A stretch of 64,000 bases of DNA from Octopus sinensis (taxonomy: Eukaryota). The DNA lies in assembly GCF_006345805.1 (NCBI RefSeq), contig NC_043006.1:71734001-71798000 (forward strand). Direction: 5' to 3'. Below the pieces are notes generated by a model, which saw nothing but the letters and a program-made list of their open reading frames with translations, had not been told where the DNA came from and ran no database searches. The position numbers and the translations under genes are program-made. Below, piece after piece: positions 14,982 through 42,007 of the stretch (positions within the stretch are counted from its first letter, which is position 1; each line of letters starts with the position of its first letter).

Positions 14982-15021
14982 ATGTTGCTGCCACAGTTGT
15001 TGCTCATATCTACTTTATTTG
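14982..15021 (+). CDS. Peroxidase coding exon 1 (signal peptide MLLPQLLLISTLF)
   Basis: CAG acceptor ends 14980, ATG at 14982, GTAAGT donor at 15022; hydrophobic stretch; phase 1. The acceptor just before the ATG implies an unlocated upstream 5'UTR exon. Confidence 0.8.
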
Positions 15022-42000: not shown

Positions 42001-42007
42001 TTATTAA
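14982..42007 (+). CDS. Secreted animal heme peroxidase (peroxidase-cyclooxygenase superfamily, chorion peroxidase/peroxinectin-like) with a ~1170-aa His/Tyr-rich insertion; 14 coding exons, 5304 nt, 1767 aa
   Basis: join(14982-15021,15681-15705,18220-18377,20191-20370,21949-21976,23711-27282,30400-30489,30954-31061,33791-34036,36246-36762,38512-38669,40293-40392,40959-41031,41999-42007). All introns are GT-AG and phases match (1,2,1,1,2,1,1,1,1,2,1,2,0). Family motifs occur in canonical order: FRTANGTCNN, WGAA, QAISHD, CC, CFPI, CINLVRS, REQVNEVTSFLDGSFIYG, CFKTGDSR, LHTIFLREHNR, QHITYNEYLP, FRFSH, IQKGRDHGLPGY, DDIDLLVGG, GDRFWY, IDLTPWK. Confidence 0.9.
15135..15530 (+). repeat. Degenerate ~40-bp minisatellite in peroxidase intron 1
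   Basis: Recurring GAGAGATATATTCAGGGTGTACTAGGGTGATGGTACC-like unit, about 8-9 copies. Confidence 0.65.
15681..15705 (+). CDS. Peroxidase coding exon 2 (VWNIQAGF, end of signal peptide)
   Basis: TTTTTTGCAG acceptor, GTAAGT donor at 15706; 25 nt bridges phase 1 to phase 2; I-Q-A|G resembles a signal peptidase site. Confidence 0.78.
16190..16514. mobile_element. MITE/foldback element with ~78-bp terminal inverted repeats (copy 1)
   Basis: 16190-16266 is the near-perfect reverse complement of 16437-16514. Confidence 0.7.
16937..17260. mobile_element. Same MITE, copy 2 (part of a ~750-bp tandem duplication)
   Basis: Almost identical to 16190-16514 at a 747-bp offset. Confidence 0.7.
17570..17972 (+). 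mobile_element. tRNA-derived CORE-type SINE, full length
   Basis: Homologous to 2602-2957. Confidence 0.75.
18220..18377 (+). CDS. Peroxidase coding exon 3 (DPKCYE...EFRTANGTCNNLGNKYWGAAYNEYSRLIPPAYIDG)
   Basis: TTTCAG acceptor, GTCAGT donor; classic N-terminal RT.DG.CNN...WGA...RL.PPAY.DG motif. Confidence 0.93.
18487..18680. repeat. Compound trinucleotide microsatellite (GTT)n(CTT)n(TAT)n
   Basis: Direct reading; one of many microsatellites in the window. Confidence 0.95.
19390..19990 (-). mobile_element. Two degenerate R4/Dong-like RLE fragments separated by (TAT)n
   Basis: Minus-strand remnants IDFAIP...RKYQD and KYQDLAI...IPVVIG; boundaries approximate. Confidence 0.5.
20191..20370 (+). 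CDS. Peroxidase coding exon 4 (LPNARVV...FFSQAISHDLSDT; distal Gln and His)
   Basis: TTTTCTTTTCAG acceptor, GTAAGT donor; LP(N/S)AR and Q-x-x-x-H-D motifs. Confidence 0.93.
21949..21976 (+). CDS. Peroxidase coding exon 5, 28-nt micro-exon (NIDCCSGPLR)
   Basis: TTCCACAG acceptor, GAG|GTAAGT donor. Supplies the CC motif and the phase 1 to 2 shift needed to join exon 4 to the giant exon. Confidence 0.82.
22895..23215 (-). mobile_element. tRNA-derived SINE, third family
   Basis: Minus-strand tRNA-like head + CCTTGAGCAAGACAC core; homologous copies at ~3025-3225, 32265-32480, 55835-56140. Confidence 0.6.
23711..27282 (+). CDS. Peroxidase coding exon 6: 3572-nt exon with peroxidase motifs at both ends (NKSICFPIV ... 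SCINLVRSS...STVR) around a His/Tyr/Ser/Lys/Pro-rich repeat insert
   Basis: TTTATTTCCAG acceptor at 23710 (phase 2); C|GTAAGT donor at 27283 (phase 1), just before the ORF-track stop; open for 1190 codons; C+GA gives the Arg of REQVNE in exon 7. Confidence 0.9.
23949..23978 (+). repeat. Coding poly-His tract (His10)
   Basis: Ten consecutive CAC/CAT codons in the giant exon. Confidence 0.9.
24141..25442 (+). repeat. Coding His-heptad array: 21-bp (7-aa) monomers organised into seven units of 56, 70, 70, 56, 70, 70 and 42 aa
   Basis: Units start at 24141, 24309, 24519, 24729, 24897, 25107, 25317, each beginning SHLL(H/Y)P; monomer consensus SHLAHAH. Confidence 0.92.
25443..25592 (+). repeat. 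Coding pentapeptide repeat HS(H/Q)TS x10 (15-bp unit)
   Basis: Direct reading of CACAGTCACACATCx repeats. Confidence 0.92.
26298..26465 (+). repeat. Coding octapeptide repeat (H/Y)HKPKSYP x7 (24-bp unit)
   Basis: Direct reading of CATAAGCCTAAATCTTATCCCTAT repeats. Confidence 0.92.
26730..27215 (+). repeat. Coding 14-aa repeat HHYGSSYYSKHHDP x11 plus a partial 12th (42-bp unit)
   Basis: Direct reading; central units nearly identical, flanking units degenerate. Confidence 0.92.
27460..28380 (-). mobile_element. 5'-truncated RTE-clade LINE (ORF2 C-terminus, long 3'UTR, (GAT)n tail)
   Basis: ORF 28004-28372: EASMLRWMCNV...RRLRWYGHVARM...GRGRPRKTW...DRDLWK, typical of RTE. The 3'UTR matches many shorter copies in the window (e.g. 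~2200-2410, 5480-5940, 7100-7690, 11900-12330, 47285-47915, 55020-55230). Confidence 0.9.
28572..28921. mobile_element. AT-rich foldback/MITE with ~115-bp inverted arms
   Basis: TAATTAAGAGAAATAACCT...ATTGAC mirrored by GTCAAT...AGGTTATTTCTCTTAATTA, embedded in TA repeats. Confidence 0.65.
30400..30489 (+). CDS. Peroxidase coding exon 7 (REQVNEVTSFLDGSFIYGTHDPRELQLGKY; calcium-binding loop)
   Basis: TTTGACAG acceptor, GTAACA donor; T-S-F-L-D-G-S calcium loop intact. Confidence 0.93.
30954..31061 (+). CDS. Peroxidase coding exon 8 (GLLRTSECLGLPFPP...PYPCFKTG)
   Basis: TTACAG acceptor, GTAAAT donor; 108 nt, phase 1-1; CF.aG motif. Confidence 0.9.
32528..32746. mobile_element. piggyBac-like MITE
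   Basis: TTAA flanks on both sides; CCCTTAGCATT / rc CCCTTTAGCATT ends; related copies near 54420-54820. Confidence 0.7.
33791..34036 (+). CDS. Peroxidase coding exon 9 (GDSRDSSNVNL...LREHNRIA...NPHW...QHITYNEYLPIILG)
   Basis: GTCACAG acceptor, GTAAGT donor; distal Arg and REHNR motifs. Confidence 0.95.
34714..35190 (-). mobile_element. mariner transposase fragment
   Basis: LLHHN...QPLYSPDLALSDFFF on the minus strand; TA(T)GAGG-type end at 34712. Confidence 0.8.
36246..36762 (+). CDS. Peroxidase coding exon 10 (NPSIINSVATAVFRFSH...FDLGSVFIQKGRDHGLPGY...LKTLY; proximal His)
   Basis: TTTTCTACAG acceptor, GTAAAG donor; proximal His at 36311-36313. Confidence 0.95.
37466..38031 (-). mobile_element. 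Internally deleted mariner element
   Basis: TA-flanked TIRs TTGGGTTGTCC(G/A)GAAAGTTTGTGC; transposase C-terminus LGWDVLPHPPYSPDIAPSDFHLFRSL...LKERW (37539-37811). Confidence 0.92.
38512..38669 (+). CDS. Peroxidase coding exon 11 (CVDDIDLLVGG...GPLFQCLMGTQ...GDRFWYQN)
   Basis: TTTACAG acceptor, GTAAAG donor; DDIDL.VGG and GDRFWY motifs. Confidence 0.95.
39376..39990 (-). mobile_element. R4/Dong-clade non-LTR retrotransposon fragment
   Basis: ETEALICAAQEQALRTNY..KCR...ETVWHIVS..HDNV..IIHSELC zinc-knuckle region; adjacent (TAT)n. Confidence 0.75.
40293..40392 (+). CDS. Peroxidase coding exon 12 (AQLASISSVKMSRIIYDNTNVKDIQPNPFYVPH)
   Basis: CTGCTTTCAG acceptor, GTAAGA donor; matches QL.EI....SRIICDN..IQ.N.F, with Tyr in place of Cys. 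Confidence 0.88.
40959..41031 (+). CDS. Peroxidase coding exon 13 (CYGYDCGYDRKYFPFKPIDLTPWKQ)
   Basis: CTTTTCAG acceptor, CAG|GTAAAG donor; C-terminal (I/L)DL..W motif. Confidence 0.85.
41110..41331. mobile_element. piggyBac-like MITE (second family)
   Basis: CCCTTT...AAAGGG ends, TTAA on the right and TCAA on the left; homologous to 58449-58668 and 58694-58911. Confidence 0.65.
41999..42007 (+). CDS. Peroxidase last coding exon (YY*) followed by 3'UTR
   Basis: Long polypyrimidine tract + CAG ending 41998; TAT TAT TAA in phase 0. Confidence 0.65.
   Translation, partial: YY

Follow-up and report, generated by a model that had tools for sequence, protein, structure and literature searches.

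A 64,000-nt stretch of the Octopus sinensis genome (NCBI RefSeq assembly GCF_006345805.1, contig NC_043006.1, positions 71,734,001 to 71,798,000 of the forward strand; referred to here as the window, with coordinates counted from its first letter) contains a gene for an animal heme peroxidase whose catalytic domain is interrupted by about 1,170 residues of His/Tyr-rich, low-complexity sequence. We are highly confident of this architecture and of the translation of the insert, and we read the locus as one intact gene, specific to the Octopus lineage, that encodes a secreted peroxidase. As to function, we assign a probability of roughly 0.55 to the best explanation as a whole, namely a translated insert together with proteolytic processing and cross-linking of an egg envelope or egg cement.

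Gene structure and point of insertion

The gene was rebuilt as 14 exons on the plus strand (14982-42007), with AG/GT boundaries at every intron (Table 1). Its product has 1,767 amino acids and a signal-peptide-like N-terminus; the mature protein has a computed mass of ~204 kDa and a pI of ~9.5. The start of the protein, MLLPQLLLISTLFVWNIQAGFDPKCYEDE, looks like a signal peptide as judged from its hydrophobicity. Exon 1 could not be joined straight to exon 3, as the phases are incompatible. The micro-exon at 15681-15705, which has strong splice sites, restores the phase and gives exactly 1,767 amino acids, the length that an earlier note on this DNA had proposed for a single protein. An alternative first exon starting from the ATG run at 15626 was superseded by this solution, which is conserved in Octopus bimaculoides. 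An AATAAA hexamer is found at 42179, downstream of exon 14.

The insert is contained in exon 6, which is bounded by the acceptor tatgtttatttccag/G at 23710/23711 and the donor TTC/GTAAGT at 27282/27283 (a slash marks a splice junction or, further below, a cleavage position). The exon 6 frame has no stop over 1,190 codons, versus 31-239 stops in the other five frames. Peroxidase sequence is encoded at both ends, in the same frame as the interior (NKSICFPIV at the 5' end, VPCKKSCINLVRSSKSPFISTV at the 3' end), and phase joins the exon to (N)IDCCSGPL(R) upstream and to (R)EQVNEVTSFLDGS downstream. The acceptor, donor, end motifs and phase joins described in the earlier note all match the sequence, and its central proposal, a His/Tyr-rich insert that splits one peroxidase reading frame with a secretory-type N-terminus, is confirmed in the gene model.

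The insertion point lies between two cysteines, the equivalents of myeloperoxidase Cys125 (in ICFPIV, 23724-23726) and Cys143 (in SCINLVRS, 27234-27236). In the octopus protein the two are 1,169 residues apart, exactly the distance given in the earlier note. The same pair is present in 133 of 134 aligned homologues, with a spacing of 8-23 residues (mode 18); none of the 134 has a loop of more than 23 residues here or a length above 937 amino acids. All four cysteines around the insertion loop (equivalents of C115, C119, C125 and C143) are kept. The variable length of the loop among homologues, together with what is known of myeloperoxidase and lactoperoxidase, points to a position on the protein surface.

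The open frame is not a matter of chance: exon 6 contains no stop even across ~1,400 nt of non-repetitive sequence, and a second species has kept this frame open too. We also considered an independent nested gene starting from the ATG at 23697 and rejected it: the predicted product has no signal peptide, both of its ends are peroxidase sequence, and its stop codon is the TAA within the GTAAGT donor.

The orthologue in Octopus bimaculoides

A RefSeq prediction from O. bimaculoides, XP_052826901.1 (uncharacterized protein LOC128248768, 1,294 amino acids), shares a 90% cluster with UniProt A0A0L8IF09 and has the same layout, from ...ICFPIVYSSHCHLDKCSGYY through a His/Tyr-rich insert to ...KAPCKKSCINLVRS... 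and a C-terminal peroxidase. It is the orthologue of the window protein, with identical exon structure and 94% identity over the C-terminal 437 amino acids; A0A0L8IF09 represents its C-terminal half. The insert is at the same position and has the same module order and three RxKR sites. Its repeat units differ (GPKYY versus KPKSY), and its alignable parts are 72-87% identical.

The locus of XP_052826901.1 (L001; CM046609.1, GCA_001194135.2) was compared with the window and found to be colinear, with introns ~87% identical. The 13 exons besides exon 6 have equal lengths in the two species, and every splice site is kept (exon 1 is identical at 39 of 40 positions, and the exon 2 micro-exon is found at L001 8564-8588). 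Exons 1-3 are intact at L001 7853-10006, even though the RefSeq model does not include them. Exon 6 is bounded by the acceptor and donor seen in the window. From its acceptor onwards it reads open as far as a 1,340-N assembly gap (L001 15068-16407, about 85.698-85.700 Mb of CM046609.1); beyond the gap, another 688 codons lead to the stop that the donor contains here as well. The gap is located inside the His/Leu array of exon 6, with flanks of the array on both sides. As the RefSeq model crosses it by an in-frame internal intron, 1,294 amino acids underestimate the length of the protein. Conservation of the insert architecture is thus supported by the colinear locus and by an independent RefSeq prediction.

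The 2015 O. bimaculoides model A0A0L8IF09 begins at an ATG in intron 6, with the polypyrimidine tract read as a fake signal peptide (MEVTMLYYLLLILLFLLSLTG). The stretch at 30299-30412 of the window is out of frame with exon 7, and we therefore regard the start of this model as an annotation artefact.

Selection on the insert

Between the two species, the ratio of nonsynonymous to synonymous substitution rates (dN/dS) is 0.24 for the peroxidase exons (dS 0.12) and 0.78 for the insert overall. Within the insert it is 0.31 for the leader, 0.34 for the (HTSHS)n and acidic module, 1.2 and 1.28 for putative released peptides 2 and 3, and 0.65 for the 14-aa repeat region. The 275 differences among 1,980 aligned nucleotides of the insert are evenly spread over the codon positions (95/93/87), indicating that residue identity is barely constrained.

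The frame itself is maintained. In a neutral simulation of the insert, 11.4 stop codons were expected and none of 5,000 runs was stop-free; no stop was observed. The frame also survives 13 indel runs between the species. The composition of the insert modules is near-identical in the two species, including that of putative peptide 2 despite its dN/dS of 1.2. All 26 tandem-repeat rows in exon 6 have periods divisible by 3, versus 11 of 36 rows elsewhere in the window; the 26 rows overlap and correspond to about eight independent arrays.

Judged by its stop-free frame, indel tolerance, composition and conserved RxKR motifs, the insert is translated, and selection acts on its open frame, its composition and its processing motifs, a pattern that is usual for low-complexity structural proteins. 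The view that it is real coding sequence, already expressed in the earlier note, is borne out by a frame that selection has kept free of stops in two species.

Anatomy of the insert

The insert is composed of His (21.3%), Ser (13.9%), Tyr (10.5%), Leu (10.5%), Pro (7.1%), Lys (7.0%) and other residues, arranged in successive modules (Table 1); Arg is scarce. Module 1 shares 87% amino acid identity with its O. bimaculoides counterpart. In module 2, His recurs with a period of 3.5 and Leu/Ala with a period of 7.0, and the sub-repeats are all multiples of 21 nt. A single-sequence AlphaFold2 model of this module consists of long helices interrupted at LHPxGG, with modest confidence (mean predicted local distance difference test score, pLDDT, of 64). 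On the basis of heptad periodicity and predicted helices, module 2 may be classified as a coiled-coil-like heptad domain. We know of no counterpart to such a 450-aa His/Leu heptad array.

Following the (HTSHS)n module, an acidic Tyr-rich stretch ends in DDDYLPRYKR/SVSKP, the first of three furin-type sites. Putative peptide 2 ends in a second RYKR (26157-26168, context DDDDDDYLPRYKR/SVSKP). Putative peptide 3 includes a 24-nt repeat, (KPKSYPYH)n, at 26285-26463, and ends in RHKR (26631-26642, context GRHKR/SADK). Tyr accounts for 15-21% of the residues in both putative released peptides. Three RxKR motifs are seen in the insert where ~0.04 would be expected from residue frequencies. Each is followed by Ser, two share the context YLPRYKR/SVSKP, and all three positions are kept in O. 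bimaculoides.

Searches with the insert returned no homologue. No Pfam family matched it, and a word-indexed homologue search found none, as its maximum of 8,000 candidates was taken up by low-complexity proteins. When 1.84 billion representatives were scanned exhaustively with HMMER, 78 weak matches to the insert came up, all of them unrelated repeat proteins (top score 102 bits). A junction-chimera query matched A0A0L8IF09 and nothing else, and an exact look-up on contigs of A0A0L8IF09 and of the 1,197-aa open reading frame (ORF) gave no match. Elsewhere in the window, translations resembling the insert modules came from (CA)n microsatellites only; the THTH... translations of such microsatellites gave spurious tblastn matches to the His-rich module.

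Table 1. Exons of the peroxidase gene and parts of the exon 6 insert, in window coordinates
Feature	Position	Strand	Description
Exon 1	14982..15021	+	ATG and signal-peptide-like MLLPQLLLISTLF; donor TTTG/GTAAGT
Exon 2	15681..15705	+	25-nt micro-exon (V)WNIQAGF(D); acceptor ttttttgcag/, donor CGA/GTAAGT
Exon 3	18220..18377	+	Start of peroxidase domain (FRTANGTCNNL...PPAYIDG); tblastn to myeloperoxidase and gene model
Exon 4	20191..20370	+	Distal heme motif FSQAISHDL
Exon 5	21949..21976	+	28-nt micro-exon (N)IDCCSGPL(R); two Cys equivalent to myeloperoxidase C115 and C119; conserved in L001
Exon 6	23711..27282	+	3,572 nt; peroxidase ends flanking low-complexity insert of ~1,170 aa
Insert module 1	23739..24083	+	Tyr/Pro/His/Asn-rich leader with poly-His run; best-conserved part of insert
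Insert module 2	24084..25436	+	His/Leu/Ala/Ser heptad array of ~450 aa; nested 21/84/168/210/378-nt repeats (Tandem Repeats Finder, TRF)
Insert module 3	25434..25594	+	(HTSHS)n, 15-nt repeat; conserved in O. bimaculoides
Furin-type site 1, RYKR/S	25788..25799	+	After acidic run; position conserved in O. bimaculoides
Putative released peptide 2	25800..26168	+	123 aa, 14.9 kDa, pI 9.5; Tyr 21%, Lys 15%, Pro 15%
Putative released peptide 3	26169..26642	+	158 aa, 19.9 kDa, pI 10.0; His/Tyr/Pro/Lys-rich
Insert module 7	26729..27212	+	11.5 copies of 14-aa unit HHYGSSYYSKHHDP (42-nt repeat); leads back into peroxidase
Exon 7	30400..30489	+	REQVNEVTSFLDGS; Ca-binding site (Thr168, Phe170, Asp172, Ser174 equivalents kept)
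Exon 8	30954..31061	+	Located via O. bimaculoides protein
Exon 9	33791..34036	+	GDSRDSS (catalytic Arg kept, ester-bond Glu to Ser) and REHNR
Exon 10	36246..36762	+	Proximal His (FRFSHF); SVFIQKGRDHG with Asn to Phe and Arg424 to Lys
Exon 11	38512..38669	+	tblastn to myeloperoxidase and gene model
Exon 12	40293..40392	+	tblastn to myeloperoxidase and gene model
Exon 13	40959..41031	+	Via O. bimaculoides protein and gene model
Exon 14	41999..42007	+	YY and stop codon

The peroxidase domain and its heme pocket

With the insert removed, the protein matches the Pfam family An_peroxidase (PF03098) with an E-value of 1.8e-129. It also matches lactoperoxidase (2ikc) with an E-value of 1.3e-68, end to end (chain residues 19-590 of 595). 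Going by profile and fold-level sequence match, it is an animal heme peroxidase, with an atypical heme pocket.

In myeloperoxidase numbering, Gln91, His95, Asp96, Arg239, Arg333 and His336 are kept, as are all residues of the calcium site (equivalents of Asp96, Thr168, Phe170, Asp172 and Ser174). Typical members of the superfamily have the distal motifs X-G-Q-X-X-D-H-D-X and X-R-X-X-E-X, two ester bonds to the heme and a proximal His-Asn pair (PMC4420034). In the octopus distal motif, FSQAISHDL, the Gln, the His and the second Asp are kept, while Ser replaces both the ester-bond Asp and the Gly; the second motif, GDSRDSS, keeps the Arg and has Ser for the ester-bond Glu. The proximal His is kept in FRFSHF, and its Asn partner is replaced by Phe. 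Five substitutions stand out against the 134 homologues: Asp94 to Ser (usual residue in 80%), Glu242 to Ser (75%, with Gln in another 12%), Asn421 to Phe (91%; Phe in both octopus species), Arg424 to Lys (98%) and Cys538 to Tyr (94%). O. bimaculoides shares all five changes. An assignment of Asn421 to a GYN motif was discarded, as the alignment puts it at the N of ALN-x-QRxRDHG.

Over 112 highly conserved columns, the octopus protein deviates at 19, compared to a median of 3.5 and to 15 for myeloperoxidase itself. The heme is probably bound non-covalently, given the replacement of both ester-bond residues. The kept catalytic residues, together with the dN/dS of 0.24, argue against a dead domain.

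A second octopus-specific insertion, of ~22 amino acids, is found in exon 10 (36330-36470, ...YYDNKGAPVCHLKDKFVLFKKHPLICSKKKYYFPF...). It is absent from 12 aligned homologues and present in O. bimaculoides.

Expression in the oviducal gland

A published oviducal-gland transcriptome of Octopus maya reports RT-qPCR (reverse-transcription quantitative PCR) primers for a contig named 'chorion peroxidase' (TRINITY_DN16362_c4_g6_i1), with a product of 116 bp (PMC8976471). The primers match the spliced coding sequence from the window at 18 of 20 and 17 of 20 positions, and that of O. bimaculoides at 19 of 20 each; the predicted amplicon is exactly 116 bp in both cases. The forward primer spans the exon 3/4 junction and the reverse primer site is in exon 4. 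The primer matches and the exact amplicon identify the O. maya contig as the orthologue, and the exon 3/4 junction is thereby validated in RNA.

The O. maya 'chorion peroxidase' transcript peaks at the fertilization (egg-laying) stage, with upregulation seen in RNA-seq as well as in qPCR (P=0.0161), and is downregulated in senescence (PMC8976471). Cement that links the eggs into strings and fixes them in place is produced and polymerised by the oviducal gland (PMC8976471). We consider it likely that the gene is expressed in this gland. Among the candidate materials listed in the earlier note, egg-stalk cement from the oviducal gland gains support from the induction of the O. maya orthologue in this gland at egg laying (PMC8976471), whereas our analysis found no support for functions in beak, radula or suckers.

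The top differentially expressed genes in Table S2 of the same study include DUOX2 and neuroendocrine convertase 1 (Pcsk1) (PMC8976471). The convertase was higher at fertilization in control than in heat-stressed females, and the authors interpreted it as prohormone processing (PMC8976471). Regulation of DUOX2 and of a convertase would also fit the H2O2 supply and the RxKR processing proposed below, as circumstantial evidence.

The O. maya contig was named from a BLASTx best match with an E-value of 3.4e-9 (PMC8976471). In comparisons with the homologues at the size of the Swiss-Prot database, the N-terminal piece of the peroxidase gives a median E-value of ~2e-11 and the C-terminal piece ~2e-67. 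The contig therefore probably holds the N-terminal peroxidase piece only. A break of the assembly in the repeats would account for this limit, and a truncated isoform would fit as well.

Proposed mechanism and alternative explanations

In the mechanism that we propose, the peroxidase domain would fold around the insert, which would be extruded from the Cys125-Cys143 surface loop and stapled at its base by a disulfide of the Cys119-Cys143 type (a pairing that we assume from myeloperoxidase). Proprotein convertases of the secretory pathway would then cut the three conserved RxKR/S sites to give a two-chain peroxidase. The N-terminal chain of 821 amino acids would carry the His-rich, coiled-coil-like heptad tail and the C-terminal chain of 646 amino acids a Tyr/His-rich tail, and the two peptides set free, both basic and rich in Tyr, Lys and Pro, would measure 14.9 and 19.9 kDa. 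In the egg envelope or cement, H2O2 from a dual oxidase (DUOX) would allow the enzyme to cross-link the Tyr-rich pieces, for example through dityrosine, and the His-rich helices might add metal-dependent or pH-dependent cohesion. Taken on its own, this scheme of processing and cross-linking is tentative, and we rate its chances as somewhat below even. The underlying idea of the earlier note, a 'self-curing' material that combines enzyme and substrate, is plausible from the sequence features. Its most specific form is rather doubtful: an egg-cement or chorion polyprotein which, after three RxKR cuts, would yield a disulfide-stapled two-chain peroxidase and two peptides resembling mussel foot proteins, all curing on extracellular, DUOX-derived H2O2.

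Several observations weigh against this interpretation. The signal peptide is an inference, and so are cleavage, metal binding and the chemistry of cross-linking. Catalytic activity is made uncertain by the D94S, E242S, N421F, R424K and C538Y substitutions. Amino acid replacement in the insert is near-neutral (dN/dS 0.78, and 1.2-1.3 in the two putative peptides), and openness and composition alone appear to be under selection there. Differences between repeat copies in the window have no third-position excess (151/170/157 by codon position) and are uninformative in this respect. Exon 6 contains in-frame cryptic GT...AG pairs, and the His/Leu array is left out of the RefSeq model, most probably as a way of crossing the N gap. 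The RNA evidence is a qPCR amplicon in exons 3-4, short of the exon 5/6 and 6/7 junctions, and comes from another species, O. maya. Finally, the direction in which DUOX2 changes is unstated in the paper (PMC8976471).

The insert could alternatively serve as a tether, a localisation module or a zymogen spacer rather than as a substrate, with the enzyme cross-linking separately encoded proteins. The His-rich, coiled-coil-like array and the sticky Tyr/Lys/Pro modules would then anchor the peroxidase in the egg envelope or in mucous cement, or hold it inactive until convertase cleavage. This explanation draws on the same architectural evidence as the self-curing precursor, and conserved RxKR sites fit activation by cleavage equally well. 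Matrix peroxidases are also known to use separate substrates; ovoperoxidase is anchored via proteoliaisin, and peroxidasin via its LRR/Ig domains. We nevertheless consider a tether or spacer unlikely. With 15-21% Tyr, the two putative peptides are obvious peroxidase substrates, and 1,170 residues in a loop of the catalytic domain would be an odd tether in a family where terminal fusions are the rule.

Less probable still, the protein could be a structural pseudo-enzyme that uses the peroxidase fold as a scaffold or adhesion domain. It would then be in essence a His/Tyr-rich structural or adhesive protein, any cross-linking being done by other enzymes. The five substitutions, which affect positions 75-98% conserved in the 134 homologues and are common to O. 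bimaculoides, would fit this explanation, as would the 19 deviating columns against a median of 3.5. On the other hand, the protein retains Arg333, the proximal His, the complete calcium site and, on the distal side, Gln, His and Arg, and the peroxidase exons are under purifying selection. The Asp or the Glu is missing in a fifth to a quarter of homologues too, myeloperoxidase itself departs from the consensus at 15 of the 112 columns, and cyclooxygenases are still peroxidases without covalent heme links.

We regard it as improbable that the insert is mostly removed from the RNA as an exitron, or that a truncated isoform dominates. Removal could use in-frame cryptic pairs (23898, 24105 or 24126 to 27143) and would restore a near-normal peroxidase, and the RefSeq model does use such an internal intron. 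That intron spans the 1,340-N gap, however, and is most simply explained as an artefact; moreover, the cryptic acceptor scores 8.0 versus 9.0-12.0 for real acceptors, and introns do not remain stop-free across 2-3.5 kb in two species. Truncation could result from retention of intron 6 or from intronic polyadenylation, either of which would give a product ending in ...STVRK*, with the N-terminal fragment and the insert but no catalytic core. The TAA at 27288-27290 inside the donor, an AATAAA at 27401 (111 nt beyond) and the apparent restriction of the O. maya contig to the N-terminal piece would be in line with this. However, AATAAA is very common in the AT-rich window (186 copies, versus 109 ± 10 expected from dinucleotide-preserving shuffles, with none on the plus strand in the 3.57 kb of exon 6), and purifying selection on the C-terminal exons indicates that they are used.

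A decaying gene or an assembly artefact, in which a tandem-repeat expansion broke an exon of a dying peroxidase gene, can be dismissed with near certainty: most protein databases lack the gene, no match covered the N-terminus or the insert in several homologue searches, and replacement in the insert is near-neutral, but both species have all 14 exons intact, with canonical splice sites, dN/dS is 0.24, stop codons have been excluded, transcription of the orthologue in O. maya is regulated, and the window sequence runs through the entire repeat array.

Relation to known systems

The octopus protein shares the PF03098 domain and the secretory character of heme peroxidases of egg envelopes and other matrices (ovoperoxidase, insect chorion peroxidase, Caenorhabditis elegans MLT-7, peroxidasin). 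As with egg-coat peroxidases, egg laying is accompanied by induction in the female reproductive tract, seen here for the O. maya orthologue (PMC8976471), and dityrosine hardening of egg coats is a known role of such enzymes (cited in PMC8976471). In the egg-envelope enzymes, however, accessory domains are terminal and substrates are separate, and the octopus protein has other residues in place of the proximal Asn and of the two that form ester bonds. Beyond the genus Octopus, its next relatives are spread over many phyla and share 30-37% identity; the matches include ovoperoxidase P0072 and MLT-7-like proteins. On this evidence, neither the chorion peroxidase of insects nor the ovoperoxidase of sea urchins is its orthologue. 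By its expression the gene behaves like an egg-coat peroxidase without being the orthologue of one.

There is also a parallel in the maturation of myeloperoxidase, which is cut just N-terminal of Cys115 into two associated chains. The RxKR sites of the octopus protein would likewise separate the distal-His piece from the proximal-His piece, and the Cys125-Cys143 loop of myeloperoxidase is near its natural cut site. Myeloperoxidase, however, removes a hexapeptide only, whereas the octopus protein would release up to ~280 amino acids and leave hundreds of insert residues on each chain.

In composition only, the insert resembles squid His-rich beak proteins, suckerins, the Nereis jaw protein and mussel foot proteins. 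The shared style consists of 21% His, short Lys/Pro/Ser/Tyr repeats such as KPKSYPYH (the mfp-1 decapeptide is AKPSYPPTYK), a basic pI and fast repeat turnover under conserved composition. Neither the word-indexed nor the exhaustive HMMER search found homology of the insert to beak proteins, suckerins or mussel foot proteins. All of these materials are made of stand-alone proteins, whereas the octopus insert forms part of an enzyme. A published study found neither the squid His-rich beak proteins nor suckerins in O. bimaculoides (PMC9068888).

A literature search found no paper on the insert, the accessions or the architecture. The novelty claimed in the earlier note holds to that extent, but the architecture is already present in RefSeq as an unnamed model, and a fragment has been labelled 'chorion peroxidase' in O. 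maya. Among heme peroxidases we know of no described precedent for a self-curing glue.

Octopus females use oviducal-gland cement to fix their eggs, thousands in number, to rock, and in the searchable literature we found no octopus egg-cement protein that had been named. The gene is a good and concrete candidate for a role in the material that hardens or glues octopus eggs. A self-curing underwater glue, if true, would be the first molecular handle on octopus egg attachment, with enzyme and adhesive packaged stoichiometrically. For biomaterials, it suggests a one-precursor design in which a catalyst is combined with cross-linkable, adhesive and His-rich modules. For enzymology, the gene indicates that the animal heme peroxidase fold tolerates a kilobase-scale insertion in a loop of its catalytic domain. 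It is also a caution for annotation, as the 2015 model starts in an intron, the RefSeq model skips the gap and misses three exons, and the transcriptome holds a fragment only.

Other features of the window

The window consists of eukaryotic DNA with a high AT content and many repeats. Intron 2 contains a tandem duplication (16096-16563 and 16843-17309, ~750 bp apart), whose copies have identical ORF translations and long (CA)n/(TA)n flanks. In O. bimaculoides, the next gene downstream (L001 34913-41342) encodes a PrmA-type methyltransferase domain (PF06325). Five short ORFs, located in introns and downstream of the gene, resemble what we take to be C-terminal fragments of non-LTR retrotransposon proteins, with sequences such as ...RLRWYGHVARM...GRPRKTW... 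(28004-28372, minus strand; 36841-36933, plus strand; 39584-39952, 43276-43707 and 44405-44797, all minus strand). The ORFs at 43276 and 44405 are diverged copies of one another.

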